Source: Lepidodermella squamata (Eukaryota > Animalia > Gastrotricha). Taken from it: a DNA stretch of 25,995 nt. The notes below the pieces were generated by a model, which was given only the letters and a program-made list of their open reading frames with translations, did no database searches and was not told where the DNA came from. Both the position numbers and the translations under genes were made by a program. This document shows positions 1-24,976 of the stretch, in pieces; the stretch's first letter is position 1; each line of letters starts with the position of its first letter. The stretch is taken from contig JBLDXI010000131.1 in assembly GCA_047495785.1 (NCBI GenBank), forward strand, positions 1 through 25,995, read 5' to 3'.

Positions 1-1726
1 ATGTTTCAAAGAAGTTATCTGGCTTCTTGAGGAACAACACAATGATTAGTAGAGTAGAAACGGAAAAGGCTCCAAAAGCTCCAGAAGAGAACAGAACCTT
101 CAGAATACAAATCTCTCCACTGTCTGAACCTAGGACGAAACTTATAGAAGCGGCATTACTCGCGATGAGAGCAAGCAATAGACCGAGTTTGAAGATTATC
201 TGTTTCCTCATCTCACTCTTTCGGCAACTTGACCGATGAATGATGATAGCTACCAGGAAATAGGTAAGGATTTGAACCAGACTGAAAGCTGCAGCAGTAC
301 ATTGGATGAAAGATACAAACTGACTTGGAGCATCGAGTTTCTTCACAAATGTTGGCGGAAAAGCTATCGGTGGTTTGCCAGACTGAGTCGCCCAGGGTAT
401 CTTATCAACCAATTGGACTAAGGAGTAACTTCCAGGGTCGAAATAGTCTCGAATAGGATCGTGGTTCACCAAAGCTAGAACTTCATACTTTTTCGCTTCT
501 TCAGACCATCGAACAATCGATTGAGGCTCGTCATCTGGCTCTAATCGCCTCGACCACTTCTGAAGACCGACTCGAATTCCTACCGGCTCTAATTCGGCTG
601 TTGTTTGATTCGCGATGCTCGAAACCAGCTCCGGGTAAGTTGCGTAATCACTCAAGGTCATATTGAGATCTTGGAGGTTCTCCTCAGTTTCATAAAGTGC
701 AAGTATCGTATTCATCATCCCATCGTGGCATGAATCCCTTATGGCGAAGTCCTGTGACATGCTAGCATTACGCCCATATCTTGCCCTGATCATTGCTTCG
801 AATCGGTCTTTATCGTAACCAAGGCTGGTCTTCCCGTAATTTTGATGCGCAAACATGTATTGCGATATCATGAAGGTGTATTTCAGCTGTTCGATGAGCA
901 TATCCCGAGTGCAGCCTTTGATTAGATTTGGGAGAACCCCATCTGGGTAAAACATGATGCTAGTTGTGGTTAGGAATACATAACGACTCCCCGTTAGGCC
1001 TTCCAAGTACGAAACGCAAAAGAATCGAATAACAAGCTCCATTGTCGAGGTTTCAATAGCGATAACTCTTAAATCACTTCTCAGTATCGACTGGATAACA
1101 CTTGGGTCGAAATCAGTTACAGCATTGATCCAAGGAACTGCCACTCCATTAGCTTGGAGTAAGTTCTGGAGTTCAACGGCACCCTTATAGTCTCGAAAGC
1201 TTGACGCGGTTGTTAGGATGGCGATCCGATCCCATTGTCCAACTTGCTTGATGAAGACCAACCTCGAAAATATGATGACGTCCGTTGTAGCCCTGATGTG
1301 ATATAGATTTGGGTACATGACCCTATCCCCGGCCATCGCAGAACAAGCCAGTCCGAAATTGTTGATATTCAAGTACTGAAAGGTCGCAGCAGCTCTTTGG
1401 CATCCAGTTGAGTAGTAGGGCCCTACAATGATAGGAGCAGCTGTCTTTTCGTAGTTCCTCAGAAAGTTCGCGATCAATCTAAGAGCGATCAAAGAGTTGG
1501 GGCCCTCGTCTAGGAATACTGGGTTGATATGATAATTCGGTAGGAAGTCAGAGCGGTTATTCGCCACATCAACTGCAACCTTCATTGCAGCCTCACATAG
1601 TTTGCCATCTCTAGGCTCGTTACCAGTGTAAGTTATCAAAGCAAGAACTGATAAATCCTTCGCTTTTCTCAACGCACTAACTGCGAGTGGGAATTGTACC
1701 AACACAAAAATGCTGATGTAATTCAT
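1..1726 (-). CDS. Duplicate copy of the class C GPCR; first ~575 codons (signal peptide, Venus-flytrap domain, TM1-3), running off the window edge
   Basis: Reverse complement of 17301-19026, with the start codon as CAT at 1724-1726. Absent from the ORF track because no stop is reached in the window. Completeness is unknown. Confidence 0.9.
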   Translation of the reverse strand, partial: MNYISIFVLVQFPLAVSALRKAKDLSVLALITYTGNEPRDGKLCEAAMKVAVDVANNRSDFLPNYHINPVFLDEGPNSLIALRLIANFLRNYEKTAAPIIVGPYYSTGCQRAAATFQYLNINNFGLACSAMAGDRVMYPNLYHIRATTDVIIFSRLVFIKQVGQWDRIAILTTASSFRDYKGAVELQNLLQANGVAVPWINAVTDFDPSVIQSILRSDLRVIAIETSTMELVIRFFCVSYLEGLTGSRYVFLTTTSIMFYPDGVLPNLIKGCTRDMLIEQLKYTFMISQYMFAHQNYGKTSLGYDKDRFEAMIRARYGRNASMSQDFAIRDSCHDGMMNTILALYETEENLQDLNMTLSDYATYPELVSSIANQTTAELEPVGIRVGLQKWSRRLEPDDEPQSIVRWSEEAKKYEVLALVNHDPIRDYFDPGSYSLVQLVDKIPWATQSGKPPIAFPPTFVKKLDAPSQFVSFIQCTAAAFSLVQILTYFLVAIIIHRSSCRKSEMRKQIIFKLGLLLALIASNAASISFVLGSDSGEICILKVLFSSGAFGAFSVSTLLIIVLFLKKPDNFFET

Positions 1727-2373
1727 TTTATAATCTATGCTTTATGCGAGATATCCTGTCAGACTGAGCGAGAGCACGCATCTTAAACATCGATCACTTG
1801 TTTGCCCCGGAAATGTCACGTTCACGAGCATAAGTCACGGTTAAATTCGTCTGGGTGTGAGATTGCCGTTGCCAACAAGCACCGACAACATGGAACCGTA
1901 CAAACGATCGATCGATAGCGTGGGTATTCAAAACTCGAAGCTTGTGAACAGTTGGAAGAGCTAGTTACCGAAAAACATAGACGTTCCATTTGATTCATTT
2001 CTGTTTATTCTGAGCCAATCCCAGTCCTCATTCCCATGAAGACTTCAAAGTAACTCGGTTTTGACGTAATGAAATCTCAGAAAAGTGAAAGTCGGAAAGT
2101 GGAGATTAACACCTGAAGAGACCGAGGGAAGAGGGAAACCTATTCAAGTCGCTAGAGCATTTTCATGTTGATTACTAATTACTAGTACCTTGCCTAGTGC
2201 TAAGCTAATAATTTGTACTGCGCGGGGTTACGAAAATCCGTGAATCGCTTTTGTAATTAGTATTATTAGAATTTCAAAGCGAAGTAACCTGCTCTAATCA
2301 TCCCTAATGGCAATTGATTGGCTTTACACCTTATGGTGCCTTATGATCAGCAATTCACCTCACTCTCAAGAAA
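1727..2373. promoter_or_regulatory. Duplicated divergent (candidate bidirectional) promoter region between GPCR and guanylyl cyclase
   Basis: 647 bp between head-to-head start codons. CCAAT at 2015-2019, CRE/bZIP-like TGACGTAA at 2062-2069, and several TAAT motifs near the cyclase side. Function is inferred from position only. Confidence 0.5.
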
Positions 2374-5300
2374 ATGCTCATCGCAATTTTCCTTATCGCC
2401 TGCCGCGCGGTTTCGGTGCACACTCAACTGTTCAAACTGGATGAAGTTTTTCGTATTGCCATCATCCTGGAAGATTTCACGCCTAACGGCACGGCTTGGC
2501 TGATAAATTCAAATGAGACGGTTTGCCATTTTATTTCCTACAACTGAATTGTTCTGCAACTATTTTCTATAGGCTGAGTCTGTGGCGAATCTCGCCATTT
2601 CGGCTGAAAACCGCCAGAACACATTGTTCAGGCTAAATCGAGCGAGAAACATAACTGGGGTACCGGCAAACAAGCACGCTAACATTACGTTCCAATACAT
2701 CAGGTCAGCAAAAGCTGAACGCATGATGGACGCAACCATGGACCCGAAAATTGCGGAGAAAAGTCGTTTGATCGCTATACTCGACACGGCTCGATGTACG
2801 GCTCAGCGGTGCAAGGAGCTGGGTGAACTAATCGAAATTTTACCCAGCTACGTCCTCACCTTATCCGCGTGCTGTTTCCCAGGAACCGGGGCGTACGTCT
2901 CTCAGAAGAAGCCGAAAGTTTCGTTTGATAAGGAAGGGGATGAGGAAAAAGAGGACGATGATGATTTCGACGATGACATTCCTGTAAGACTAACATCCTT
3001 TCCAAGATTAATCTTCAATGGCTTGGAACCTCATTCGACCGTTAATTTTGCCCTGCAGCTGTCAAAACGCTACAACTGGAGGCGATTTCACTTCGTTTTG
3101 ACCCCGAACTGGCCGGCTGCTGATAAGTTTTTCGAAGATCTGAACTCGTACTTCAAGTCGAGGAAGTCGGACTTGGTCATGACAAAATCGTTCCTCTGCA
3201 CAGTCCGCTTAGCCCAGCTGCAAGTTTGCAGCCGCAATAATCAAGTCAGAAGATTGATTCTTTTGAAAGCTACCGTGACCTTTCTTTTGCTCGAGAGTGA
3301 GAGTGATATCTTTGAATTTTCACGGGAATTGAAATCGATTGCGGACAATGACATAGTGCTGGCGAATGGGAAAGCCTTGTTCGTTATTTCCTGGACTGGT
3401 ACAGTCAATACCCTTATCGAACCTTTAATCAAGGATGGTCTGGAAGGTCTGATGATTCTTCGCCAAAAGCGGATGCTATTCGATAACTTCAGAGTAAACA
3501 AACCTCAATTTAATTGATTTTTTCTCATTTTTTAAAAATATTTACAGATAATCAGAAGTCGTGGTATACCAAGTGCTGGTATGGGTACCCAGTTCTACAC
3601 GGATATAAGGGTCCTAGCAAAGGCGGTTGATATCTATGTCAATAACCAAGCTCAACTCCGTAACTTCGCGACGATATTCTGCGGCTCGAGGTTTACATGT
3701 AAGTATAAAGTTCTAATCAGCCCTAATAGCCTTGAAGTTTCGATATTTTCAGTCAGAGAATCACCTGAACCCTTCGTGCAGTTCGGCAACGATTGCGAAA
3801 AGGACGTCATCGCTCTTGAGGCATTCAACCTACAGTATAGTGGAGAAAACGGGCAGATGTCTTTCATCAAGGTTTTCGAGTCGTTTGGCCGGACTCTGAA
3901 CATGACGGAACTACCCCGCTGGATCGGCTCAGGTTTTCAAAGGCCTGAAGAGAATGAGTGTGAACTCGAAGGTAGTGGATCGGGCTGTCCCATCTCACTG
4001 AGAACAATTCTACCACCAGCAATCTCTGGCTCGGCTGTTATTTTAATCATTGTCCTAGCCGTGACAATTATCACGTTTCGCTACTCGCGAAAACAGCGTC
4101 GTTTGAAGGAAACCACGCGGAATGCTGTTCTAGCTGCCTTCAGCGAGTTGGAGTTCTTGAAAGCTGAAAAGGAAGATTGCGACTCAAGGGCTCAAAGTTC
4201 TCAAATTGGTTCTCGGCCGAGCTCAGCCGTAGGATCAGAGAACAAGGAATCCACTACGATTGCTGTGATCGACCCAAATGGTAACCGCCTATCCCATACA
4301 GGCCTGATACCACATTCCCAGGATATGCTGACAGCTGGGAAGATAGTTGGGGCTAAGTTTCGAGGCGATAACGTTCTTGTGACTCTACTGAGCAAGTACA
4401 CGTGCCAAACGGACGATTCTCTGATACAAGAACTGGTTCAACTGAGAGAATTGCGGCACGACAATGTTAACCCATTCATCGGAATTATACCAGATGCGTA
4501 TCGGGTCTGTGCGCTGTACGATTTCTGCGCCAAAGGAACCCTAGCGCAAGTTCTAGCTCGAAAAACTCTCCAACTTAACAGGCTGTTCAAGGTCTCTTTC
4601 GTCAACGACATTGCATCTGTGAGTTTCGAATGCCACTGGTTCAATTTTCAATTTTTTTCTAAGTAGGGGATGGCTTATCTTCATCAATCGGCTGTCGGTT
4701 CGCACGGCGACCTCACCTCAGAAAACGTATTGGTCGACGCTCGCTGGTTCTGTAAAATCAGCAATATACCGATTACATCGCTTCGTTACGTTGAAATGGA
4801 TGAATTCGGCATACAACGACCCCTTGGTTTCGTCCCTCAACATCTGAATGCCACCGCCTACCGCGCAAATCCCTTGATTGCTGATCTCAAAGCTGCCTAT
4901 GATTCAATGCCGCCTCAAGGAAACTACTGGACCGCGCCAGAGCTACTTAAAATTCCTGAAATTCTACGACCACCGCGAGGCACTCAGAAAGCTGATGTCT
5001 ACTCGTTTGGAATTATTGTTTTCGAGGTGCTGACACGACTGATGCCATATAGCCAGTACAACCTGCCGGAAAAGGTTATTCTATCGCGAATTAGAGCTGG
5101 ATCTTACCCGCCTTTCCGACCATACTGCCCGCCTGAAACCTTGCCTGGCGACGTGAGCGATCTCATGGAACTCGCTCGAAATTGCTGGGATGAAGTCTCA
5201 GCGTTTCGGCCAGGCTTCTCAGCAATTGTTCGAATTTTGCAGAAGGTTAGCCATGGAAAGTAAGTTGAATCCATTTTTCGTGGAATACTAGCTCAAAATT

Positions 5301-6109
5301 CTCGAATTTTAGGGAAATATCAGCAGTTCTGGTTGATGAAATGATTGCAACTATGGAGAGCTATGCCGAAAACCTCACACATCTCGTGAGAGTTGGCCGA
5401 GGAACAAAAGCGATCTGAAGATTTGTTGAGCAAAATGCTACCACGATCGATCATTGACGAGCTGAAAAGCGGCCGAGTGGTTGTACCAGAATTTTTTGAT
5501 TCAGTCACGGTCTATTTCTCCGACATTGTGGGCTTCACGAATCTAGCTGCCGAGTCTTCCGCCCTGGATATTGTCAATTTTCTGAACGATCTGTACAGCG
5601 AATTCGACCAGGTTATCGATTTATACAACGTTTACAAAGTCGAAACGATTGGCGATGCCTACATGGTGGCGAGTGGTCTGCCTATCAGGTATAAGACGCA
5701 TGTTGCCGAAATCGCGACTATGGCTCTCGAAATGATGAGTCGAGTTACAACGTTCAAAATACGCCATCGGCCTGAAAAGTTCTTGCAGCTTCGCATCGGA
5801 ATCCATACTGGATCTGTTGTAGCTGGGATAGTAGGTCTCAAGATGCCTAGATACTGCTTGTTCGGAGATACGGTGAATTACGCGTCTAGGATGGAGAGCT
5901 CTGGCCTAGCCCTCAGGATTCATGTCAGTCCTGAGGCTAAAAGAGCTCTGGATGCGATCGGTGGGTTCAAATTCGAGCGAAGAGGCTTGGTATCAATGAA
6001 GGGGAAGGGACAGATTGAGACTTACCATCTGGTTGGTAAGGAAGGGTTTTACAAGCCTCTTCCAGACTTGAGCTTCGCTGCTTCATTGGAAGAGCACGAA
6101 TTCAAATGA
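2374..6109 (+). pseudogene. Frameshifted copy of receptor guanylyl cyclase (exons 2374-2520, 2573-3493, 3548-3698, 3753-4618, 4667-5259, 5313-6109); premature TGA 5416-5418 gives ~927 aa lacking the cyclase domain
   Basis: Same exons as the 12904-16653 copy. The 16 nt at 5377-5392 (ACACATCTCGTGAGAG) replace 30 nt, net -14, so the frame reads ...[18 protein letters not shown]-stop. It could be a pseudogene or an expressed truncated receptor. Confidence 0.85.
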
Positions 6110-6241
6110 TTGAAACAGCAAATTATAATTTATTCTCGTCACTGGAATTATTTTGAAACATTCACGAATCGTCAGTCTCTTACACTAAAAGGAAATCACC
6201 TGGTTTCTAGTCTTTATCACACATTGTTAGAGAAAACTGTG

Positions 6242-7477
6242 CTAATCAGTTAGATAAACATGTTTGGCGCTTAACTGTAGAGTGCGTTTGTCGAAAAGTG
6301 AGGCGCATTGTCTTTTGGTTTTCTCAAGGTGTTCATCCAGCTTCACCATCAATTCATCCATACGACTTGTGAAGCGATCAATCTCATCCTCGAAACCGCC
6401 TGAGAACACAAGTAAAAACAGAAATTCAAATGAAATGGCTCTCACTCTACCTTCTTCCGTGTACAAGAATCTCTTGTCGATATTTAAGGCTGGGGGCCGC
6501 TTTGGCTTCATTCCAAGAGTTTTCATAACTTTATCAATCATGAACTGGATAACTGCTCTTTCGGCCTCTTGAGCTTTTGTATCCATCACAGCATCGGCAT
6601 ACGCGTACACAATGAAGGCGATCAAGAAATTAGTCAAAATAATTGTGACCAGGCAAGAGTAGAACAAAAAGAAAGCAGGACCCAAAGCTGGGTAGTACCG
6701 CCTCAGGCTAGTGTAATCAAAAACACCCATTTGCATACTGAGACAGGTTTCAAGAGAGGAGACGAAGGTCGAGTATGGCTGAAGGGTGTTTCCAAACGCC
6801 AGAAATCCCAACTGAGCGAAGGCTAGGAACAGCGTCATGAAAACGTACGTGAAATTCTTCAAAACAGGCTGTGCTAGGGTTAGGGTATGCAACATCAGCA
6901 TGATGTGATGGTCGAATCTCAACAAGCGAATAAATCGAAGTGTCCCAACTGAGACGATGACTGCGGCAAACACCGAGACCATGAAGTCGTAGACAATTAT
7001 CAAGTCCATGTTTGTGTAGGAATTGATTCGGTTTTTGAAGCCGCCGGCTACATGTTTGAAGGCGAAATAGCGAGCTGCAAACATCCCAGCCCAGACCAGG
7101 CACGAGAGGAGATGGGCGAAATCGACGACTAACCAACCATCTCTCCAGTATTCAAGCTTCTTTTTCCGAGCTTTGATGCATTCTCGGATGAAGAGTACGA
7201 GAACAACGAGGAGGCAAACAAGCTGGACAGCGAGGTTCACCATTTCACCTGGGGTACTGTATGACTGCATCCTGAAAAAAGAAATCGATGATAAAGGAAA
7301 ATATTTAACCGGGCATTCTCACTTGAGGATGTAAAAGTACGGATAAAGGACAATGCCACCCGTCGGAGGAATCTCTAGTATGGTCTGGCTGACAGCGAAA
7401 ATACTTCGACTTGGATTGTATAGATTGAATTCCAAAAACAAGCCCCGCGTCTTCTCATCAAGCCAGCGACTGCTCTT
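6242..7477 (-). pseudogene. Inverted 3' fragment of the PKD1-like gene (end of TOP domain, last TM segments, C-tail), without its own 5' end
   Basis: Reverse complement of 11536-12771, with an identical 342-aa ORF at 6242-7270 and mirrored introns 7272-7322 and 6400-6450. It begins abruptly mid-exon at the junction. Confidence 0.9.
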
Positions 7478-10400
7478 TATTGGGCGCCCTACAAGCAGTT
7501 CCAGCCCAGAGTATCTCCACGGACTTTCAACGGCTGATCCTTAAGGCTTTGGCTCCATCCGTCACTATTTTGTCAAACTACTCGAAAGACATCACTATCG
7601 ATCCGAATGATATGGACTCAGCTGCCAGTGCTTGCGTCAATGCGATGGGAAAGCTATCAGAGGTTATGGAATTTTCCAGAAAATTTGTTGAGCCGGCTAA
7701 CCCTCTCCTAACGACAACCACCTTATCGCCCAGTGATGATCCTTACTGGTCTCCCAAGACAACAACGATCTCTCCTAACGCTAGGCAACTAATGATTGAT
7801 CTTCAGGCCCTTCGTGAGGTATGTTTCCAGTACGGTCTTTTGTTTATCATTGTGTTTACCCTATTGTTAATGCCAGAAAATCATGATGGTAGTCCTTGCT
7901 GGAAAGGGCGTACAAGAGAGTAGATCTGTGATTGGTGGTTCATCCTCGAAAATGTGTCTTTCAGCAGATTTTGTCGGAAATCTTGCCAACGGTGAGTTTC
8001 AAGCCAGGGTCTATGAATCCGGCCTAATCTAATCTTGCATTTCAGCTAAACTAGCAAGTGGTAGCGATGAAGACTGTGGAGCGTTCCAGCTGGGCGATTC
8101 ATCGGCCATGTTTGGGCCTACAATCAGGGAGGGCTTGAAGAAGATTGGAGCTAACCCGAACAATACCGAACTTTTTAATGCCGCTATTATCAAGCTCAAG
8201 GTCGCTTCAGATTCCGGAAATGCCTATTCGAGTCTTCAAAACAGCGAGACGCCTCTCAATTCGATGATCCAGTCGTTGGTGATGGTCGACGAGGACGGCA
8301 ACGAAGTCAGAGTGAAAAATTTGCCATACTACATGGAGATTATGGTGGAGTCTAAGAATGCCGACCCTCCAAAATCGATACTAACAGTGGCCCCTGGTTT
8401 AGACCTGTCTCGCATTATGAAACCCATCAATCTCCCCGTTACTAAAAATTCAGCCGTCTTCCTCACTGTAGATCAAATATTGAACATTTCAACGACTGAA
8501 TTTGCTGTAAATGCAAGCTGTAACGTTACCAAGGACAAGAACTGTAAGGATCCGTATGGGAATGTCACAGCGGCGTTTGGCTCGAAAAACATTACCATAA
8601 GCGAACTGAATGCTACATCTGACGAAGTTGTATTCTTTGTATTCGTGAATCGCGATGGTTTTTTCCCGAAGGAATCGACTGTTTTACCTAATCTTGGTTG
8701 TTTGCTGCCCCGATCAAGGGTCGAAGAAGAATTGTGGGCTATAAGGTATCCTGAAGGCACAACTGGCAGTTTGACCACAACGGCTGCCTCAGGATCAACA
8801 ACGTCTGGCGCCTCAACTTCAGGAATCCTCAGCACGACCCATTCTCTGTCTATGACTACAACAGCGTCTGTGAATGTAACAGTGCCGCCTTCGCAACAGA
8901 AGGACGATGGTTCAGCCAGCTCTTCGAAGAAACAATGCAAGAAAAACCCTGCTTTACCTTCGAACACGTGCTTCTTCGGAAATGAGGCCATGAATATCAA
9001 GTAAGTGAAGTTTTGTCTTCGTGGATCATTGAACAGTGTAATTGATTTACGTTTAGAAATGATACGATGAAGCTATACGTCGGCATCAGAGCGATTCCTA
9101 TGCGAGAGTTTAGGAAACTTCTTCAGAAGCTGCATTCGGAAATTCAATCTGGATTGAACGAAACTATCATCATAAACCGTACCATGTCGTCACTGATCAA
9201 CCAAACCGCTACTGCTTTGATTAGGTACAATTCTTACGCAGCAACTTGCAACTTTTGGGACGCAGACATCAGTGATTGGTCCACAGATGGTTGCTATGTT
9301 GGTCCCCTAACCACGGCCGGGGGTTACCCGAGCCTAACTCAGTGCTTCTGTAACCATCTCACGACGTTCGGGTCCAACTTCAATGTCCCAATGAACACTT
9401 TCAATCCCAGCGATTCAGCTTTCACACGGCTTGATCAGAACCCTGTTTGTTTCACCTTCGGCATTTGCATTTTCATGCTGTATTTCACCGTGCTGATATG
9501 GGCGAGGAAGCAAGATAAAGAAGACGAGAGAATGTGGGGCACCTTACCGCTTATCGATAATGACCCAAGAGATCGTTATGCTTACGAACTCACAATTTGG
9601 ACCGGTAAAAGGAATGGAGCCGGCACAACTGCTAGGGTGACATTCATTCTGACGGGCGATGAAGGAGAAAGCGGGCCCAAGTTACTGGATGGCATCGAAC
9701 GGCCTATTTTGAAACGGGGTCAAGTCGATTCCTTCCTAATGACTGTTCCTCGTTCGTTGGGGAAGCTGTATCAGCTTCACATTTGGCATGATAACTCCGG
9801 CAAGCATCCTGGCTGGTATTTCTCACGAATGATGGTACATGACTTGCAGCGGAACCAACAGTACTTTTTCATCTGCGACCGATGGCTGGCTGTTGAGGAA
9901 GACGATGGTATGATAGAAAGGACACTTTCGATCGCTGACAAACAACAGCTCATCCAGTTCGAACGCGTTTTCATGACCAAGTCTCAACGCAGTCTCAGCG
10001 ACGGTCACATGTGGATTTCAGTTTTCAGCCGACCACCAAGATCCGCCTTCACTAGAACCCAGCGTCTTACTTGCTGCCTATCAGTCCTATACTGCACCAT
10101 GCTAGCAAATATCATGTTTTTCGGTATTAGCAGAGATGGTCCGGATGCAGCCCGTGTTGATATCGGACCTCTGAGTATCAGCAGCCAGAAAATTATGATC
10201 AGCGTAATTTCAGCTCTCATCGTCATGCCGGTAAATCTGGTGATTGTGCAGCTATTCCGGTTGAGCAAGAGAAAGTTGAGCACTAGCGAGAAGGAAGTTG
10301 AAGAGATCAAACGGAAAATCATGCAGAATCACGATAATGCTTTAAATAATTTTAACAAGAAACAGTCGCTCAGTGGTCAGCCAAGCACCGCTTCCCAAGT

Positions 10401-12771
10401 GCCACTAATCGGGGCTTCGACTGTAGCCTCTTCGACCAAACCTAAACGCAAGAGAATGGAAAAGGCGAAGAAAAAGCCCTTCAAGCTACCTTGGTGGTGT
10501 TCTATCGTAGCGTATTGCCTCGCAACTGTCGCTTGCGGTGTTGCTTTTTGGGCAATTGTTGAGTACGGAGGAGCCCTGGGACCTCAGAAAGCTACCGAGT
10601 GGCTGATTGCGATGGTGATTTCTCTTGTGACCGATATATTGTGCCTCCAGCCCCTAAAAATTCTGGCATTGGCCGCCTTCTACGCTTTGATCATAAAAAA
10701 TCCTGGCAAAGACGAGGATATCGATGAATTGATGGCTCTCAAGCAGGACGAGCAGTTCATGCGGCCTCGAACTATGTCTGTATCAGAAAAGAAAGAAGTT
10801 GAGGAAAAACGGCAAGAAGCCAAAGCAATGAGACAAGAGTACATTTTTTTGCCTCCGGACCCTGACGAGCTTCGCCAAGCTAGGGAAATCCGACTGAAGG
10901 AGTTAGCAATGTGGCGAATCATCAAAGAAGTCGGCTCTTACGTCATTTTCTTGTATATGATCATGTTCGTAGCCTACAGCAACATCGACGTCTTCTCGTT
11001 TGAAATGCAAACAACCGCCAGGCGGGCATTCATTCAAGCTAAATTTGTGAATGCTGGCGTAGCTTTAACTGATGTTCATTCCAGTGACCAGTTTTGGGAC
11101 TACGCCAATATCACCTTGCTGCCAACACTCTTCAATAGAACGTGGTACAACGGAAATCCTGAAGAGCTGAAAGGCTCATTTTCAAGGGAGAAGACCCTTT
11201 ACTTGGCTGGAGTTCTGCGCCTCCGCCAGGTCCGAATGAGTAATGAAGGATGTCGAATAGTGAAAAAATTCCGAGGATTCCTTCTGCCCTGTGCATCCGA
11301 GTACAATATCTTAGCACAGGAGACTCGGAATTACACGAAGGGCTGGAAGTCTCTCGATATCAATGGATCAACCGCGAACCAAAGTAGTGCTATCGACAGA
11401 GCCTGGAGTTACAAATCTCCGCTCAAGACTGGATCAAGTCCATCCCAAGGAAATTTAGCTCTGTACGATGGCGGTGGGTACACAGCTGAATTTCCCAAGG
11501 TTTTGGAACAAGCAATAGCTTTGCTGAGTGACCTCAAGAGCAGTCGCTGGCTTGATGAGAAGACGCGGGGCTTGTTTTTGGAATTCAATCTATACAATCC
11601 AAGTCGAAGTATTTTCGCTGTCAGCCAGACCATACTAGAGATTCCTCCGACGGGTGGCATTGTCCTTTATCCGTACTTTTACATCCTCAAGTGAGAATGC
11701 CCGGTTAAATATTTTCCTTTATCATCGATTTCTTTTTTCAGGATGCAGTCATACAGTACCCCAGGTGAAATGGTGAACCTCGCTGTCCAGCTTGTTTGCC
11801 TCCTCGTTGTTCTCGTACTCTTCATCCGAGAATGCATCAAAGCTCGGAAAAAGAAGCTTGAATACTGGAGAGATGGTTGGTTAGTCGTCGATTTCGCCCA
11901 TCTCCTCTCGTGCCTGGTCTGGGCTGGGATGTTTGCAGCTCGCTATTTCGCCTTCAAACATGTAGCCGGCGGCTTCAAAAACCGAATCAATTCCTACACA
12001 AACATGGACTTGATAATTGTCTACGACTTCATGGTCTCGGTGTTTGCCGCAGTCATCGTCTCAGTTGGGACACTTCGATTTATTCGCTTGTTGAGATTCG
12101 ACCATCACATCATGCTGATGTTGCATACCCTAACCCTAGCACAGCCTGTTTTGAAGAATTTCACGTACGTTTTCATGACGCTGTTCCTAGCCTTCGCTCA
12201 GTTGGGATTTCTGGCGTTTGGAAACACCCTTCAGCCATACTCGACCTTCGTCTCCTCTCTTGAAACCTGTCTCAGTATGCAAATGGGTGTTTTTGATTAC
12301 ACTAGCCTGAGGCGGTACTACCCAGCTTTGGGTCCTGCTTTCTTTTTGTTCTACTCTTGCCTGGTCACAATTATTTTGACTAATTTCTTGATCGCCTTCA
12401 TTGTGTACGCGTATGCCGATGCTGTGATGGATACAAAAGCTCAAGAGGCCGAAAGAGCAGTTATCCAGTTCATGATTGATAAAGTTATGAAAACTCTTGG
12501 AATGAAGCCAAAGCGGCCCCCAGCCTTAAATATCGACAAGAGATTCTTGTACACGGAAGAAGGTAGAGTGAGAGCCATTTCATTTGAATTTCTGTTTTTA
12601 CTTGTGTTCTCAGGCGGTTTCGAGGATGAGATTGATCGCTTCACAAGTCGTATGGATGAATTGATGGTGAAGCTGGATGAACACCTTGAGAAAACCAAAA
12701 GACAATGCGCCTCACTTTTCGACAAACGCACTCTACAGTTAAGCGCCAAACATGTTTATCTAACTGATTAG
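7478..12771 (+). CDS. Polycystin-1 family (PKD1L/REJ-like) receptor-channel subunit, 5'-truncated; exons <7478-7818, 7877-7991, 8046-9000, 9057-11690, 11742-12562, 12614-12771 (~1670 aa visible)
   Basis: GPS motif CNFWD...WSTDGC...TQCFCNHL|TTFG (HL|T at 9355-9363), followed by TM1. PLAT domain (YELTIWTG...AGTTARV...WHDNSGKHPGWY...CDRWLAVEEDDG). TOP domain (GVLRLRQVR, YDGGGY, WLDEKTRGLFLEFNLYNP). Channel TMs with pore-like QMGVFDY, and a C-terminal coiled-coil-like helix. All five introns are GT-AG, 51-58 bp, and phase-consistent. Confidence 0.93.
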
Positions 12772-12878
12772 CACAGTTTTCTCTAACAATGTGTGATAAA
12801 GACTAGAAACCAGGTGATTTCCTTTTAGTGTAAGAGACTGACGATTCGTGAATGTTTCAAAATAATTCCAGTGACGAG

Positions 12879-12884
12879 AATAAA
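12879..12884 (+). terminator. Candidate poly(A) signal AATAAA for the polycystin gene
   Basis: Canonical hexamer 108 nt after the stop codon, in the 132-bp gap between convergent genes. Confidence 0.5.
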
Positions 12885-12903
12885 TTATAATTTGCTGTTT
12901 CAA

Positions 12904-15900
12904 TCATTTGAATTCGTGCTCTTCCAATGAAGCAGCGAAGCTCAAGTCTGGAAGAGGCTTGTAAAACCCTTCCTTACCAACCAGATGGTAAGTCTCAATC
13001 TGTCCCTTCCCCTTCATTGATACCAAGCCTCTTCGCTCGAATTTGAACCCACCGATCGCATCCAGAGCTCTTTTAGCCTCAGGACTGACATGAATCCTGA
13101 GGGCTAGGCCAGAGCTCTCCATCCTAGACGCGTAATTCACCGTATCTCCGAACAAGCAGTATCTAGGCATCTTGAGACCTACTATCCCAGCTACAACAGA
13201 TCCAGTATGGATTCCGATGCGAAGCTGCAAGAACTTTTCAGGCCGATGGCGTATTTTGAACGTTGTAACTCGACTCATCATTTCGAGAGCCATAGTCGCG
13301 ATTTCGGCAACATGCGTCTTATACCTGATAGGCAGACCACTCGCCACCATGTAGGCATCGCCAATCGTTTCGACTTTGTAAACGTTGTATAAATCGATAA
13401 CCTGGTCGAATTCGCTGTACAGATCGTTCAGAAAATTGACAATATCCAGGGCGGAAGACTCGGCAGCTAGATTCGTGAAGCCCACAATGTCGGAGAAATA
13501 GACCGTGACTGAATCAAAAAATTCTGGTACAACCACTCGGCCGCTTTTCAGCTCGTCAATGATCGATCGTGGTAGCATTTTGCTCAACAAATCTTCAGAT
13601 CGCTTTTGTTCCTCGGCCAATTCCTTAGTTCGAGCTTGAACAGTTGCCTCGAGGTTTTCGGCATAGCTCTCCATAGTTGCAATCATTTCATCAACCAGAA
13701 CTGCTGATATTTCCCTAAAATTCGAGAATTTTGAGCTAGTATTCCACGAAAAATGGATTCAACTTACTTTCCATGGCTAACCTTCTGCAAAATTCGAACA
13801 ATTGCTGAGAAGCCTGGCCGAAACGCTGAGACTTCATCCCAGCAATTTCGAGCGAGTTCCATGAGATCGCTCACGTCGCCAGGCAAGGTTTCAGGCGGGC
13901 AGTATGGTCGGAAAGGCGGGTAAGATCCAGCTCTAATTCGCGATAGAATAACCTTTTCCGGCAGGTTGTACTGGCTATATGGCATCAGTCGTGTCAGCAC
14001 CTCGAAAACAATAATTCCAAACGAGTAGACATCAGCTTTCTGAGTGCCTCGCGGTGGTCGTAGAATTTCAGGAATTTTAAGTAGCTCTGGCGCGGTCCAG
14101 TAGTTTCCTTGAGGCGGCATTGAATCATAGGCAGCTTTGAGATCAGCAATCAAGGGATTTGCGCGGTAGGCGGTGGCATTCAGATGTTGAGGGACGAAAC
14201 CAAGGGGTCGTTGTATGCCGAATTCATCCATTTCAACGTAACGAAGCGATGTAATCGGTATATTGCTGATTTTACAGAACCAGCGAGCGTCGACCAATAC
14301 GTTTTCTGAGGTGAGGTCGCCGTGCGAACCGACAGCCGATTGATGAAGATAAGCCATCCCCTACTTAGAAAAAAATTGAAAATTGAACCAGTGGCATTCG
14401 AAACTCACAGATGCAATGTCGTTGACGAAAGAGACCTTGAACAGCCTGTTAAGTTGGAGAGTTTTTCGAGCTAGAACTTGCGCTAGGGTTCCTTTGGCGC
14501 AGAAATCGTACAGCGCACAGACCCGATACGCATCTGGTATAATTCCGATGAATGGGTTAACATTGTCGTGCCGCAATTCTCTCAGTTGAACCAGTTCTTG
14601 TATCAGAGAATCGTCCGTTTGGCACGTGTACTTGCTCAGTAGAGTCACAAGAACGTTATCGCCTCGAAACTTAGCCCCAACTATCTTCCCAGCTGTCAGC
14701 ATATCCTGGGAATGTGGTATCAGGCCTGTATGGGATAGGCGGTTACCATTTGGGTCGATCACAGCAATCGTAGTGGATTCCTTGTTCTCTGATCCTACGG
14801 CTGAGCTCGGCCGAGAACCAATTTGAGAACTTTGAGCCCTTGAGTCGCAATCTTCCTTTTCAGCTTTCAAGAACTCCAACTCGCTGAAGGCAGCTAGAAC
14901 AGCATTCCGCGTGGTTTCCTTCAAACGACGCTGTTTTCGCGAGTAGCGAAACGTGATAATTGTCACGGCTAGGACAATGATTAAAATAACAGCCGAGCCA
15001 GAGATTGCTGGTGGTAGAATTGTTCTCAGTGAGATGGGACAGCCCGATCCACTACCTTCGAGTTCACACTCATTCTCTTCAGGCCTTTGAAAACCTGAGC
15101 CGATCCAGCGGGGTAGTTCCGTCATGTTCAGAGTCCGGCCAAACGACTCGAAAACCTTGATGAAAGACATCTGCCCGTTTTCTCCACTATACTGTAGGTT
15201 GAATGCCTCAAGAGCGATGACGTCCTTTTCGCAATCGTTGCCGAACTGCACGAAGGGTTCAGGTGATTCTCTGACTGAAAATATCGAAACTTCAAGGCTA
15301 TTAGGGCTGATTAGAACTTTATACTTACATGTAAACCTCGAGCCGCAGAATATCGTCGCGAAGTTACGGAGTTGAGCTTGGTTATTGACATAGATATCAA
15401 CCGCCTTTGCTAGGACCCTTATATCCGTGTAGAACTGGGTACCCATACCAGCACTTGGTATACCACGACTTCTGATTATCTGTAAATATTTTTAAAAAAT
15501 GAGAAAAAATCAATTAAATTGAGGTTTGTTTACTCTGAAGTTATCGAATAGCATCCGCTTTTGGCGAAGAATCATCAGACCTTCCAGACCATCCTTGATT
15601 AAAGGTTCGATAAGGGTATTGACTGTACCAGTCCAGGAAATAACGAACAAGGCTTTCCCATTCGCCAGCACTATGTCATTGTCCGCAATCGATTTCAATT
15701 CCCGTGAAAATTCAAAGATATCACTCTCACTCTCGAGCAAAAGAAAGGTCACGGTAGCTTTCAAAAGAATCAATCTTCTGACTTGATTATTGCGGCTGCA
15801 AACTTGCAGCTGGGCTAAGCGGACTGTGCAGAGGAACGATTTTGTCATGACCAAGTCCGACTTCCTCGACTTGAAGTACGAGTTCAGATCTTCGAAAAAC

Positions 15901-16653
15901 TTATCAGCAGCCGGCCAGTTCGGGGTCAAAACGAAGTGAAATCGCCTCCAGTTGTAGCGTTTTGACAGCTGCAGGGCAAAATTAACGGTCGAATGAGGTT
16001 CCAAGCCATTGAAGATTAATCTTGGAAAGGATGTTAGTCTTACAGGAATGTCATCGTCGAAATCATCATCGTCCTCTTTTTCCTCATCCCCTTCCTTATC
16101 AAACGAAACTTTCGGCTTCTTCTGAGAGACGTACGCCCCGGTTCCTGGGAAACAGCACGCGGATAAGGTGAGGACGTAGCTGGGTAAAATTTCGATTAGT
16201 TCACCCAGCTCCTTGCACCGCTGAGCCGTACATCGAGCCGTGTCGAGTATAGCGATCAAACGACTTTTCTCCGCAATTTTCGGGTCCATGGTTGCGTCCA
16301 TCATGCGTTCAGCTTTTGCTGACCTGATGTATTGGAACGTAATGTTAGCGTGCTTGTTTGCCGGTACCCCAGTTATGTTTCTCGCTCGATTTAGCCTGAA
16401 CAATGTGTTCTGGCGGTTTTCAGCCGAAATGGCGAGATTCGCCACAGACTCAGCCTATAGAAAATAGTTGCAGAACAATTCAGTTGTAGGAAATAAAATG
16501 GCAAACCGTCTCATTTGAATTTATCAGCCAAGCCGTGCCGTTAGGCGTGAAATCTTCCAGGATGATGGCAATACGAAAAACTTCATCCAGTTTGAACAGT
16601 TGAGTGTGCACCGAAACCGCGCGGCAGGCGATAAGGAAAATTGCGATGAGCAT
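12904..16653 (-). CDS. Receptor (transmembrane) guanylyl cyclase, NPR/GC-family architecture, ~1162 aa; exons 16653-16507, 16454-15534, 15479-15329, 15274-14409, 14360-13768, 13714-12904
   Basis: Signal peptide MLIAIFLIACRAVSVHT, a divergent ANF-type ectodomain and one TM (AVILIIVLAVTIITF). Kinase-homology domain (LRHDNVNPFIG, DIASGMAYLH, WTAPELL, ADVYSFGII) and signalling helix MESYAENLEATVQARTKEL. Cyclase motifs [18 protein letters not shown] and [19 protein letters not shown] carry the GTP-specifying Glu/Cys. Introns are 48-54 bp and the spliced length of 3489 nt is divisible by 3. Confidence 0.95.
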
Positions 16654-17300
16654 TTTCTTGAGAGTGAGGTGAATTGCTGATCATAAGGCACCATAAGGTG
16701 TAAAGCCAATCAATTGCCATTAGGGATGATTAGAGCAGGTTACTTCGCTTTGAAATTCTAATAATACTAATTACAAAAGCGATTCACGGATTTTCGTAAC
16801 CCCGCGCAGTACAAATTATTAGCTTAGCACTAGGCAAGGTACTAGTAATTAGTAATCAACATGAAAATGCTCTAGCGACTTGAATAGGTTTCCCTCTTCC
16901 CTCGGTCTCTTCAGGTGTTAATCTCCACTTTCCGACTTTCACTTTTCTGAGATTTCATTACGTCAAAACCGAGTTACTTTGAAGTCTTCATGGGAATGAG
17001 GACTGGGATTGGCTCAGAATAAACAGAAATGAATCAAATGGAACGTCTATGTTTTTCGGTAACTAGCTCTTCCAACTGTTCACAAGCTTCGAGTTTTGAA
17101 TACCCACGCTATCGATCGATCGTTTGTACGGTTCCATGTTGTCGGTGCTTGTTGGCAACGGCAATCTCACACCCAGACGAATTTAACCGTGACTTATGCT
17201 CGTGAACGTGACATTTCCGGGGCAAACAAGTGATCGATGTTTAAGATGCGTGCTCTCGCTCAGTCTGACAGGATATCTCGCATAAAGCATAGATTATAAA
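16654..17300. promoter_or_regulatory. Candidate bidirectional promoter shared by the guanylyl cyclase and the class C GPCR
   Basis: 647 bp between divergent ATGs (16653 -, 17301 +). ATTGG (CCAAT box) at 17008-17012 and TTACGTCA at 16958-16965. Confidence 0.5.
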
Positions 17301-19700
17301 ATGAATTACATCAGCATTTTTGTGTTGGTACAATTCCCACTCGCAGTTAGTGCGTTGAGAAAAGCGAAGGATTTATCAGTTCTTGCTTTGATAACTTACA
17401 CTGGTAACGAGCCTAGAGATGGCAAACTATGTGAGGCTGCAATGAAGGTTGCAGTTGATGTGGCGAATAACCGCTCTGACTTCCTACCGAATTATCATAT
17501 CAACCCAGTATTCCTAGACGAGGGCCCCAACTCTTTGATCGCTCTTAGATTGATCGCGAACTTTCTGAGGAACTACGAAAAGACAGCTGCTCCTATCATT
17601 GTAGGGCCCTACTACTCAACTGGATGCCAAAGAGCTGCTGCGACCTTTCAGTACTTGAATATCAACAATTTCGGACTGGCTTGTTCTGCGATGGCCGGGG
17701 ATAGGGTCATGTACCCAAATCTATATCACATCAGGGCTACAACGGACGTCATCATATTTTCGAGGTTGGTCTTCATCAAGCAAGTTGGACAATGGGATCG
17801 GATCGCCATCCTAACAACCGCGTCAAGCTTTCGAGACTATAAGGGTGCCGTTGAACTCCAGAACTTACTCCAAGCTAATGGAGTGGCAGTTCCTTGGATC
17901 AATGCTGTAACTGATTTCGACCCAAGTGTTATCCAGTCGATACTGAGAAGTGATTTAAGAGTTATCGCTATTGAAACCTCGACAATGGAGCTTGTTATTC
18001 GATTCTTTTGCGTTTCGTACTTGGAAGGCCTAACGGGGAGTCGTTATGTATTCCTAACCACAACTAGCATCATGTTTTACCCAGATGGGGTTCTCCCAAA
18101 TCTAATCAAAGGCTGCACTCGGGATATGCTCATCGAACAGCTGAAATACACCTTCATGATATCGCAATACATGTTTGCGCATCAAAATTACGGGAAGACC
18201 AGCCTTGGTTACGATAAAGACCGATTCGAAGCAATGATCAGGGCAAGATATGGGCGTAATGCTAGCATGTCACAGGACTTCGCCATAAGGGATTCATGCC
18301 ACGATGGGATGATGAATACGATACTTGCACTTTATGAAACTGAGGAGAACCTCCAAGATCTCAATATGACCTTGAGTGATTACGCAACTTACCCGGAGCT
18401 GGTTTCGAGCATCGCGAATCAAACAACAGCCGAATTAGAGCCGGTAGGAATTCGAGTCGGTCTTCAGAAGTGGTCGAGGCGATTAGAGCCAGATGACGAG
18501 CCTCAATCGATTGTTCGATGGTCTGAAGAAGCGAAAAAGTATGAAGTTCTAGCTTTGGTGAACCACGATCCTATTCGAGACTATTTCGACCCTGGAAGTT
18601 ACTCCTTAGTCCAATTGGTTGATAAGATACCCTGGGCGACTCAGTCTGGCAAACCACCGATAGCTTTTCCGCCAACATTTGTGAAGAAACTCGATGCTCC
18701 AAGTCAGTTTGTATCTTTCATCCAATGTACTGCTGCAGCTTTCAGTCTGGTTCAAATCCTTACCTATTTCCTGGTAGCTATCATCATTCATCGGTCAAGT
18801 TGCCGAAAGAGTGAGATGAGGAAACAGATAATCTTCAAACTCGGTCTATTGCTTGCTCTCATCGCGAGTAATGCCGCTTCTATAAGTTTCGTCCTAGGTT
18901 CAGACAGTGGAGAGATTTGTATTCTGAAGGTTCTGTTCTCTTCTGGAGCTTTTGGAGCCTTTTCCGTTTCTACTCTACTAATCATTGTGTTGTTCCTCAA
19001 GAAGCCAGATAACTTCTTTGAAACATCAAGGCTTCCTAATGTCTTGAATGGAGCTATACTGGTCGATATACCGAATTCTCCTGGTTCACCGCAAGTCCAT
19101 CCCGGTAGACCTCGAGCTATGACAGCTGAAAGAAAAAGCGCTGCGATATCGAACCTTCAAAAATTCCGAAGCGTTTCTCGAAAGTACAGCACAATGATTG
19201 CAAGTCAGCGGCAGTTACCTAGACTACCGATTTTAGGAATTTCATTACTCACCCTTCTTCAGTGTTTCATAACGATATTATGGCTCGCCTTTGATACCCC
19301 TCGATCTAAGACGATCAGCACTACAAATGGGCCTATATACATTTTCGACTCGAATAGAGATTTCTATCAAGATACAACAACTTCAGTTTGCATGAGCAAT
19401 TACTTCACGAAATGGCTTGGCACTCTCTGCGCGATTCAGGGCCTTACCTTCGTCTCATGCATTGTCATTCAGTCGAGAAATAGACATCGGCAGGATATCA
19501 AACCATTGACAATAACCCAGGTCAATTTGACTACGTTATTAGCTGCAGCCATCATGTTGAACTACGTCATATCAAGTCCTGTTCTACAGGGCATAATCAA
19601 TTCGATAATTGCACTCGTGATATCGTGTGTAAGCTATGTTTTGACTTTTGGACGAGAGGCGGCTAGTCACATAAACAGGTCTTTCGTCTCATCTCATTGA
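17301..19700 (+). CDS. Intronless divergent class C GPCR (Venus-flytrap + 7TM, GABA-B-like architecture), 799 aa
   Basis: Signal peptide and ANF-type binding-domain motifs (FLPNYHINPVFLD, PIIVGPYYS, YPNLYHI, WDRIAIL). Stalk IPW...GKPP with no cysteine-rich domain. Seven hydrophobic segments, with Cys at the top of TM3 (EIC) and in ECL2 (VCMS). Confidence 0.85.
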   Translation: MNYISIFVLVQFPLAVSALRKAKDLSVLALITYTGNEPRDGKLCEAAMKVAVDVANNRSDFLPNYHINPVFLDEGPNSLIALRLIANFLRNYEKTAAPIIVGPYYSTGCQRAAATFQYLNINNFGLACSAMAGDRVMYPNLYHIRATTDVIIFSRLVFIKQVGQWDRIAILTTASSFRDYKGAVELQNLLQANGVAVPWINAVTDFDPSVIQSILRSDLRVIAIETSTMELVIRFFCVSYLEGLTGSRYVFLTTTSIMFYPDGVLPNLIKGCTRDMLIEQLKYTFMISQYMFAHQNYGKTSLGYDKDRFEAMIRARYGRNASMSQDFAIRDSCHDGMMNTILALYETEENLQDLNMTLSDYATYPELVSSIANQTTAELEPVGIRVGLQKWSRRLEPDDEPQSIVRWSEEAKKYEVLALVNHDPIRDYFDPGSYSLVQLVDKIPWATQSGKPPIAFPPTFVKKLDAPSQFVSFIQCTAAAFSLVQILTYFLVAIIIHRSSCRKSEMRKQIIFKLGLLLALIASNAASISFVLGSDSGEICILKVLFSSGAFGAFSVSTLLIIVLFLKKPDNFFETSRLPNVLNGAILVDIPNSPGSPQVHPGRPRAMTAERKSAAISNLQKFRSVSRKYSTMIASQRQLPRLPILGISLLTLLQCFITILWLAFDTPRSKTISTTNGPIYIFDSNRDFYQDTTTSVCMSNYFTKWLGTLCAIQGLTFVSCIVIQSRNRHRQDIKPLTITQVNLTTLLAAAIMLNYVISSPVLQGIINSIIALVISCVSYVLTFGREAASHINRSFVSSH

Positions 19701-19745: not shown

Positions 19746-19975
19746 ATGGATTTGTTAGAAACATCCGGGATCAGTGTAAGTTAGGGAAAACACTGAAATT
19801 TTCCAAAAAATATCAAAACGTGCACTTATAAATGAACAAAAACGCGCAAAAGCCAAACGTCGCATCTTCAGGCAACCACCATTGGTCGCCGTCATTAGGG
19901 TAAATTCCGATTTTACCGCTGTAATAGCGCAAGAAATATATTTCTATATAATATATAACTCCAGTATTAGTATAT

Positions 19976-24300: not shown

Positions 24301-24524
24301 ACTTGTCAGCGGGTCTTCACTCGGGGCCCTGCCTATTGCGACGGCCATTCACTCTTCTCAAACCGAAGACTGCTATAAGTAGGTTGCTCCAACTCACGAA
24401 TCATTTTTAATTTTAATTTTAATTATTTATTAATTTGTTTTCGTGTAATTCAAAAAATCTGGAAATTGTTTTTTAAATTAAATTAAAAAATGATTGTTTA
24501 ATTTTCTGAAAATGCATAAATATC

Positions 24525-24976
24525 TGTTGTACGCCTATACGGTATTTAAGCCTTTAGGGTATGAGCATTGTATTCAACCGAAACAATGGCCAAACCGTGA
24601 GGGTCACCATCGATCATCATATATCAATCGATTGCTGTAATTAAGGGCTATCGATTGGTGCCAAATCGAATTCCGCGCGGAACTTTTGGAAATATGATTT
24701 TTGCCTTCAAAGTTAAAAAAATGCGGAAAATTTGCGTTTTTTGGCCAAAACTTTACCCTGAGTGTGCCGCGCGGAATTCGATTTGGCACCAATCGATAGC
24801 CCTTAATTACAGCAATCGATTGATATATGATGATCGATAGTCACCCTCACGCCTCACGGTTTGGCCGCTATGACAGTTTAAAATATTGCTTATCCCGTAT
24901 AAATTATATCTAAGCTTATACGGTATAGGCTTAAGCCTATACCGTATAAGCTTAGATCCTCTATAGGCGTACAACA
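24525..24976. mobile_element. 452-bp fold-back MITE-like element with TGT..ACA ends, 15-bp TIR and 4-bp TSD (TATC), in the transposase intron
   Basis: TGTTGTACGCCTATA (24525-24539) and TATAGGCGTACAACA (24962-24976), with TATC at 24521-24524 and 24977-24980. Internal inverted repeats 24588-24680 / 24767-24866. Confidence 0.8.
24908..24957. repeat. Perfect 50-bp spacerless palindrome
   Basis: ATCTAAGCTTATACGGTATAGGCTT|AAGCCTATACCGTATAAGCTTAGAT is its own reverse complement. Confidence 0.97.

Follow-up and report, generated by a model that had tools for sequence, protein, structure and literature searches.

Contig C131 of the genome assembly of the gastrotrich Lepidodermella squamata carries a gene-scale palindrome at one of its ends. 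The question raised by this locus is whether the palindrome belongs to the genome of the animal or was formed in the DNA from which the assembly was made. The window analysed was the entire contig (positions 1–25995; 25,995 nucleotides), with position 1 being the contig end.

Structure of the palindrome and comparison of its arms

The presence of a 19-kb mirror-image duplication in the deposited sequence was confirmed. Two perfect inverted pairs were detected with a repeat finder (1–5376 / 13651–19026 and 5390–7477 / 11536–13623), and base-by-base comparison showed positions 1–7477 to be the reverse complement of positions 11536–19026, one complex indel apart, with 0 substitutions in 7,461 aligned bases. 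The two arms are separated by a spacer of 4,058 bp (7478–11535). A preliminary description of this DNA, made from the letters alone, had reported reverse-complement arms, a 4058-bp spacer and one difference, all of which was borne out by the repeat finder and the base-by-base comparison; the self-alignment and SNP count that it had proposed gave 0 SNPs in 7.46 kb. Two other statements made there did not hold. The mirrored ORFs do not all translate alike, the cyclase ORF being, owing to the indel, 238 aa long in the left arm (5393–6109) and 260 aa in the right (12904–13686), and the arm is not a "receptor cluster" but contains one receptor guanylyl cyclase gene and parts of two others. These are the first 1.7 kb of a gene for a multi-pass membrane protein with an ANF-receptor domain and, at the other end of the arm, the final 1.2 kb of a polycystin-1-like gene. 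The features are listed in Table 1. No other copy of the locus was found in a search of the assembly contigs. As a small control, internal stretches of other contigs totalling 136 kb were examined, and no inverted repeat reached a length of 300 bp with ≥97% identity.

Table 1. Features of contig C131.
Feature	Position	Strand	Basis or detail
Left arm, inverted copy of 11536–19026, reaching the contig end	1..7477		Complementarity 100% bar one indel
Mirror copy of guanylyl cyclase gene, frameshifted	2582..6109	+	ORFs, domains
Sole arm difference, complex indel	5377..5392	+	16 nt, ACACATCTCGTGAGAG, vs 30 nt at 13621–13650
PKD1L2-like 3′ end, truncated mirror copy	6242..7477	-	ORF 6242–7270 with PKD_channel
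Fold-back junction, 7477/7478	7471..7478		Sequence and paralog alignment
Spacer, mid-part of polycystin-1-like (PKD1L2-like) gene, 4,058 bp, single-copy	7478..11535	+	Domains, protein matches
PKD1L2-like gene, 5′ end cut by junction	7478..12771	+	ORFs, domains, paralog comparison
Right arm, collinear with the remainder of the contig	11536..19026		Arm comparison; two border-crossing genes read through intact
Receptor guanylyl cyclase gene, intact copy	12904..16445	-	ORFs and domains
799-aa ORF, ANF_receptor domain, ~6–7 hydrophobic segments	17301..19700	+	Domain and protein comparison
Interspersed repeats occupying the right end of the contig	19971..25995		Dozens of copies, 75–96% identity, many contigs

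The difference between the arms is located in the guanylyl cyclase gene, 2,085 bp (~2.1 kb) from the junction. The intact copy of this gene was shown to consist of an extracellular part (15510–16445), a transmembrane and kinase-homology part (13764–15446) and a linker and cyclase part (12904–13686), with PK_Tyr_Ser-Thr, HNOBA-type linker and Guanylate_cyc (E 2e-67) domains. As the indel has a net length of 14 nt, the left copy is frameshifted, and the frameshift sits just ahead of the cyclase domain. Together with its 2-nt flanks, the 16-nt patch forms a 20-nt string that recurs at G000:C104:1757–1776 (chance expectation ~0.014 for the search as run); C104 is not a cyclase paralog. A local source of the patch was rejected, since the window contained no match at three or fewer mismatches and only 8-mers in common. 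An adapter origin (SMRTbell or Nextera ends) was dropped because the resemblance was partial.

Genes cut at the junction and at the contig end

The PKD1L2-like gene contains exon-like ORFs at 7478–7923, 8033–9004, 9046–11694 and 11695–12771, the last of which carries PKD_channel; GPS, PLAT and Polycystin_dom were found in the ORF 9067–11694. The spacer takes in a REJ-like region, GPS and PLAT as well as the greater part of the polycystin domain, the end of which is present in the fragment at 6242–7477 together with PKD_channel. The best named matches of the 875-aa exon were to polycystin-1-like protein 2 from other phyla (36–39% identity). All protein matches to this exon were to distant PKD1L2-like proteins, with no L. 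squamata sequence among them, and a word-based protein search gave no matches to the junction exon (7480–7920). Within the mirror copy, positions 7322–7483 on the minus strand matched residues 822–875. The junction fuses two mid-exon points within one PKD1L2-like gene, and the gene is truncated on both sides of it.

Alignment to three paralogs (on contigs C9, C15, and C103) showed that the homology begins exactly at position 7478. Compared to the gene on C131, the paralogs contain ~2,300 further N-terminal residues, or ~7 kb of 5′ coding sequence, and the corresponding ~7 kb of the C131 gene was not found anywhere in the assembly. Ten N-terminal PKD1L2-like loci were found to pair with 10 of the 11 C-terminal ones, the unpaired one being that of C131. 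The end of a different contig might have carried the missing 5′ half of the gene, but no such orphan was found: each N-terminal locus is accompanied by a C-terminal half of its own. Thus, the assembly is incomplete exactly where the fold-back starts. The final 6–7 bases of the arm encode Cys-Ser, matching the paralogs on C15 (CSLL) and C9 (CAVL), the true upstream DNA being absent from the assembly. To judge from these residues, the arm probably ends in a microhomology of ~7 nt (TGCTCTT) with the true upstream sequence.

At its other end, the left arm reaches base 1 of the contig within unique coding sequence, and no second breakpoint or chromosome feature is reached. Inspection of the sequence upstream of the window had been suggested in the preliminary description; position 1 proved to be the first base of the contig. 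The outer limit given there, position 19026, mirrors the contig end and is no biological boundary. It falls in unique coding sequence within the 799-aa ORF, which spans this outer arm limit unchanged, and the arm ends 945 bp short of the first repeat. Because the point equivalent to 19026 lies in unique coding sequence of an intact ORF, the assembler had no reason to stop there. The possibility that the 799-aa ORF encodes a second guanylyl cyclase was rejected, since it contains neither a kinase nor a cyclase domain and is not similar to the cyclase gene. The ANF-receptor family is also represented on contig C11, where a natural, diverged head-to-head pair was found (identity 89% across 1.4 kb; spacer 4.9 kb).

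In the left arm, the PKD1L2-like fragment is truncated, the cyclase gene is frameshifted and the ANF-receptor gene is cut. The arms are also asymmetric: the left one measures 7.5 kb, whereas on the right the collinear sequence extends over at least 14.5 kb. In our reading, the left arm (1–7477) is the artefactual part and the right arm (11536–19026) is the genuine locus. The same gene content bears on the idea of an old palindrome held identical by gene conversion from arm to arm, like the amplicons of sex chromosomes. The long and nearly identical arms, set a few kb apart, would suit such a palindrome. However, on the inner side the arm boundary falls within an exon and on the outer side none can be seen, nor was a palindrome found to be conserved at the paralogous loci on C9, C15, and C103. 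As one arm contains only gene fragments and a frameshifted copy, gene conversion has nothing to preserve, and we find this explanation hardly credible.

Origin of the palindrome

The only published L. squamata assembly, described by its authors as the first genome of the phylum Gastrotricha, was obtained from one animal by phi29 multiple displacement amplification (MDA; REPLI-g), 13-kb HiFi reads (mean 13,358 bp; BioProject PRJNA1063365) and hifiasm, and consists of 122 Mbp in 157 contigs with a GC content of 43%. The assembly analysed here (121.23 Mb, 151 contigs, GC ~44%) is presumably this MDA assembly, based on the species and the matching statistics (151 vs 157 contigs). The read filter used in the L. 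squamata study removed only reads with their two ends on different contigs, and nearby inverted chimeras were therefore never filtered from the reads. The species is confirmed by the species-specific microRNA hairpin Lsq-Mir-Novel-6, both arms of which are present exactly in the analysed assembly, at the published spacing of 122 nt. An unamplified short-read data set for this species was mentioned as in preparation in a paper of 2019.

The published heterozygosity of L. squamata is 2.987%, and ~220 differences would be predicted in 7.46 kb between two haplotypes. The absence of any SNP over this length contradicts a join of two haplotypes, an option that the preliminary description had raised. 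More generally, a join made by the assembler, either of two haplotypes or of the same reads in both orientations, and involving no chimeric molecule, is very improbable: although C131 is a small unplaced contig with its right end in repeats, a string-graph walk needs at least one junction-containing read to turn back.

Chimeras formed during MDA have been reported to be inverted in ~85–91% of cases, with the segments usually <10 kb apart. Priming complementarity of 2–21 nt was found in >70% of the junctions, and in 93.5% for inverted segments <10 kb apart, and the length of the overlap peaks at 7 nt. Of PacBio reads from MDA products, 42–76% were chimeric, with one event per 2–7 kb. The segments joined in C131 derive from one locus, are in opposite orientation and lie 4,058 bp apart, i.e., <10 kb, and the chimeric part (7,477 bp) is shorter than the mean HiFi read. 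The lack of SNPs between the arms is what is expected for two copies of one template molecule. Besides, the private indel had been held to speak against a simple copy of one read, which is a weak argument: in long-read MDA data a chimeric event occurs every 2–7 kb, and 2.1 kb separate the indel from the junction.

The palindrome is very probably an in vitro product, namely a strand switch during MDA that was built into the contig end. Of the three classes considered in the preliminary description, the MDA or long-read template-switch chimera is thus favored, and the fold-back inversion and the gene-converted palindrome are not; the suggestion of a very recent or actively homogenised duplication is unsupported as biology for a read-sized arm at a contig end from an MDA-amplified animal. 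During MDA of the single animal, a strand growing to the left would have copied the locus from 19026, or from further right, as far as 11536. The 3′ end of this strand, once displaced, would have re-annealed ~4 kb further on to another displaced strand of opposite sense, by pairing of ~7 complementary nt, and would then have been extended rightwards from 7478. The product molecule would consist of the reverse complement of 11536–19026, followed by 7478 onwards, and this chimeric molecule or its amplified progeny may have been sequenced as HiFi reads. With the true sequence to the left of 7478 poorly covered or lost, hifiasm would have extended the contig with the chimeric read or reads, and the contig would stop where the chimeric read stops. 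The 16-for-30-nt patch may most simply be explained by a further, short switch of template within this molecule. The junction and the indel survived the read correction and chimera trimming of hifiasm, which indicates several supporting reads and thereby requires an early, re-amplified chimera. Early-formed chimeras may attain high depth (bioRxiv 10.64898/2026.06.11.730069).

A real rearrangement would leave the same pattern of a surviving junction and a private indel, and a microhomology at the junction would be equally consistent with template switching in vivo. A real, very recent inverted duplication could have arisen in this asexual gastrotrich by fold-back or by a microhomology-mediated template switch at replication or repair. 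Such an event would have destroyed the PKD1L2-like gene and added to the receptor guanylyl cyclase gene a second copy, frameshifted and devoid of the cyclase domain, and the contig would end in the left arm as the assembler failed on the long perfect inverted repeat. We consider this origin unlikely, although the polished HiFi consensus carries both the junction and the indel, the presence of the locus nowhere else in the assembly means that no intact allele is in conflict with it, and the pair on C11 shows that inverted duplicates do occur in this genome. Ordinary reads should have covered and extended a true arm, but the arm halts at the contig end in unique sequence, before the first repeat is reached. 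The asymmetry of the arms, the fact that both duplicated genes are broken, and the absence of substitutions in a lineage with ~3% heterozygosity also argue against a real duplication, as does the use of MDA-amplified DNA, in which inverted chimeras of just such geometry dominate.

If the palindrome is an MDA artefact, the leftmost 7.5 kb should be removed from the contig by trimming, and neither the "second" guanylyl cyclase copy nor its cyclase-less reading represents a gene of the animal. The PKD1L2-like gene of the assembly would then be incomplete and lack ~7 kb of its coding sequence. Caution of this kind is also called for in any long-read assembly from MDA-amplified single meiofaunal animals.

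Comparison with known inverted chimeras and palindromes

The C131 palindrome resembles the inverted chimeras described for MDA (model of Lasken and Stockwell, 2007; palindromic reads of Warris et al., 2018, and Lu et al., 2023) in that it consists of inverted segments from the same locus. The position of the new template, in front of the displaced 3′ end, agrees with the displaced-5′-strand model (Lasken and Stockwell, 2007). In addition, the second small rearrangement ~2 kb off and the origin from single-animal REPLI-g DNA are shared, and a priming overlap of ~7 nt would be in keeping with such chimeras. The palindromic reads were raw reads, whereas the present case is an assembled contig, and the C131 chimera must therefore have been re-amplified or have fallen in a coverage gap.

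Misassemblies produced by hifiasm from MDA data (bioRxiv 10.64898/2026.06.11.730069) concern the same library type and a sister data set of the same study. In that independent re-analysis, hifiasm made 1,753 misassemblies on the sister C. elegans MDA data and the duplication ratio reached 1.24; inverted chimeric nodes interrupted or ended linear paths, and duplication was inflated. That benchmark was scored against the C. elegans reference, whereas L. squamata has no reference.

Natural fold-back inversions, which include inverted duplications with deletion and the products of breakage-fusion-bridge cycles, likewise combine an inverted duplication with a single-copy spacer and loss of sequence beyond the junction; a microhomology at the junction would be another common trait. 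They are defined by presence in the organism's own DNA and by a doubled copy number, whereas the C131 palindrome is known from the assembly alone, and its arm differs in ending at a contig end and not at a chromosomal feature. Gene-scale palindromes have reportedly also been described in the assembly of the bdelloid rotifer Adineta vaga, another microscopic asexual animal, where they invited a biological reading, and collapse or mis-joining of haplotypes is said to have been proposed as their cause. Compared to these, the arms of the C131 palindrome are identical despite the heterozygosity of 3%.

Organization of the palindrome and gene content

A repeat search of the window detected two perfect inverted pairs, 1-5376 / 13651-19026 and 5390-7477 / 11536-13623. 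Base-by-base comparison of 1-7477 with the reverse complement of 11536-19026 showed no substitutions and one complex indel, which was the sole difference between the arms: the left arm has 16 nt at 5377-5392 where the right arm has 30 nt at 13621-13650. The exhaustive comparison thus confirmed the arm coordinates of the preliminary description and its claim of a single difference. The possibility raised there of a join of two haplotypes was excluded by the absence of substitutions, as compared to a published heterozygosity of 2.987%.

At both inner borders, the sequence showed no inward continuation of the palindrome beyond 7477/11536. Contig C131 (25,995 bp; assembly of 121.23 Mb in 151 contigs) is entirely covered by the window, so that the left arm stops at the contig end; 19026, where the right arm has its outer limit, merely mirrors that end. 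Position 19026 was found to be surrounded by unique sequence within an intact 799-aa ORF that crosses the arm limit uninterrupted. Interspersed repeats start at approximately 19971 and occupy the rest of the contig to its right end. Near this end (24520-24980), a repeat unit of ~424 bp with internal inverted symmetry was seen, which is dispersed over many contigs and present as four tandem units on contig C33 of the assembly under study, G000 (G000:C33:2482753-2484455). No second copy of the genic part of the contig was present in the assembly, where only paralogs with 66-72% DNA identity were found. No inverted repeats with a length of ≥300 bp and an identity of ≥97% occurred in a small control of 136 kb internal sequence of other contigs.

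Features of the palindromic contig and the species marker locus
Feature	Position	Strand	Description
Single-copy spacer	7478-11535		4,058 bp
Polycystin-1-like gene	7478-12771	+	GPS, PLAT, polycystin and PKD-channel domains
Receptor guanylyl cyclase	12904 to ~16445	-	Kinase-homology region, linker, cyclase domain (E 2e-67)
Intronless 799-aa ORF	17301-19700	+	ANF-receptor domain, then ~6-7 hydrophobic segments
Lsq-Mir-Novel-6 locus	G000:C19:1572615-1572755	-	Exact match of both arms; species marker

The best named relatives of the polycystin-1-like gene were polycystin-1-like protein 2 from echinoderms and a brachiopod (36-39% identity). Dozens of clustered PLAT/polycystin-like matches with 24-28% identity to this gene were found on contig C24 (4.17-4.64 Mb and 2.36-2.60 Mb) and constitute an extensive tandem gene family of the PKD1-like or PKD-REJ-like type. 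On contig C1 (G000:C1:1282553-1308876), guanylyl-cyclase-domain matches (45-47% identity) occur eight times in tandem within 26 kb, each on the minus strand. A distant cyclase-domain match showed the same scores, spans and open-frame length at G000:C138:10178-10537 and G000:C33:1417492-1417851; C138, a small contig, may duplicate part of C33 or be a haplotig of it. The 799-aa ORF was rejected as a second cyclase, as it contained neither a kinase nor a cyclase domain and showed no similarity to the cyclase gene. Its layout resembles that of a class-C GPCR, but the Pfam 7tm_3 model gave no match up to a threshold of E 5.

The left arm contains a mirror copy of the entire cyclase gene, together with the initial 1.7 kb of the 799-aa ORF and the final 1.2 kb of the polycystin-like gene. 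The indel is located in the linker of the cyclase gene, directly before the cyclase domain, and causes a frameshift confined to the left copy; its right counterpart is in frame throughout and matches the end of Pfam HNOBA (residues 8-46, E 3.9e-4) directly before the cyclase domain. An old palindrome with arms kept alike by gene conversion is unlikely, since every gene in the left arm is broken and an exon is interrupted at the inner border.

The junction and the private indel

At the 7477/7478 junction, antisense sequence of the polycystin domain (arm side) meets sense sequence from 4 kb upstream in the same gene (spacer side). Paralogs on contigs C9, C15, and C103 align to the window starting exactly at 7478 and contain upstream ~2,300 more N-terminal residues (6-7 kb of sequence with long ORFs), which are absent from the gene studied here. 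Searching the assembly with 1,319 N-terminal residues of a paralog detected ten N-terminal loci of the close family, and the 875-residue exon of the gene studied here detected eleven C-terminal loci. Each N-terminal locus had its own C-terminal partner, leaving only the palindromic contig unpaired. The missing N-terminal half is nowhere in the assembly, so that the assembly lacks sequence precisely at the point where the fold-back begins.

The reading frame is open through the junction. The arm's two final complete codons specify Cys-Ser, compared to Cys-Ser (C15) and Cys-Ala (C9) at the homologous paralog positions. In the simplest reading, the true sequence upstream of 7478 would also end in approximately the same 6-7 bases (TGCTCTT). 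The reverse complement of this motif is found at 11536-11542, and TGCTCTT may represent a short priming overlap, a probable microhomology. Switching in vivo is equally compatible with microhomology, and both the junction and the 16-nt patch of the left arm survived consensus building, as expected for a real, very young inverted duplication. However, the left arm lies at a contig end in unique sequence, the arms are asymmetric and the DNA is of a provenance that argues against it (see next section); such a duplication is considered improbable.

No source of the patch was found within the window. Extended by 2 nt at either end (20 nt, 5375-5394), it was identical to C104:1757-1776, 1.7 kb from the start of a contig with no cyclase paralog (chance expectation ~0.014 for the search as run). 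The 2-nt identities on both sides are shared by C104 and the two arms. The patch looks like a brief double template switch and is possibly a templated insertion matching the C104 site.

Source of the DNA and comparison with amplification chimeras

The only published genome assembly found for L. squamata (122 Mbp, 157 contigs, 43% GC) was obtained with hifiasm 0.15.2 from HiFi reads (mean 13,358 bp) of one animal after multiple displacement amplification (MDA). The assembly under study has a GC content of ~44%. Lsq-Mir-Novel-6 is a microRNA reported as new for L. squamata (supplement of PMC6468455). Each of its arms had one exact occurrence in the assembly under study, on the same strand of contig C19; their starts are separated by 122 nt, the spacing of the published hairpin. 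From species match and statistics, we infer that the two assemblies are the same. The chimera screen of the genome authors discarded only reads with two ends on different contigs, and inverted same-locus chimeras could therefore not be caught. An independent re-analysis with hifiasm of C. elegans data from the same study reported 1,753 misassemblies and a duplication ratio of 1.24, and stressed that early-formed chimeras are re-amplified to high depth (bioRxiv 10.64898/2026.06.11.730069).

MDA chimeras arise when a displaced 3′ end anneals again, to another displaced strand close by, and is then extended. Inversions account for 85% of them, the joined segments are mostly <10 kb apart, and 2-21 complementary bases are present at priming in >70% of junctions (93.5% of the inverted ones with segments <10 kb apart). 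A later review reported priming overlaps peaking at 7 nt, 42-76% chimeric reads in MDA PacBio data, ~89% of chimeras inverted, and one event per 2-7 kb. Among mitochondrial long reads of a tardigrade amplified with the kit that was used for L. squamata (REPLI-g), approximately one in three was palindromic.

Two paralogs of the ANF-receptor gene on contig C11 (G000:C11:597695-599093 / 603950-605348) form a natural, diverged inverted duplicate, which lends some support to a real duplication. This head-to-head pair is separated by a 4.9-kb spacer and showed 89% identity over 1.4 kb and 69% over another 0.3 kb, whereas the inverted duplicate studied here is perfect. The palindrome is very probably an artefact. 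As in MDA inverted chimeras, two inverted segments are joined, here over a distance of 4,058 bp, the putative overlap is ~7 nt, and the arm (7,477 bp) fits within a single read. The 3′ end has its new template in front of it, as in displaced-5′-strand geometry and not as in self-priming. The second small rearrangement is located 2,085 bp from the first, and because events are this dense in MDA data, the patch is no argument against a chimera; the earlier view that the private indel speaks against a copy of one read is weak. All measurable features agree with an MDA inverted chimera.
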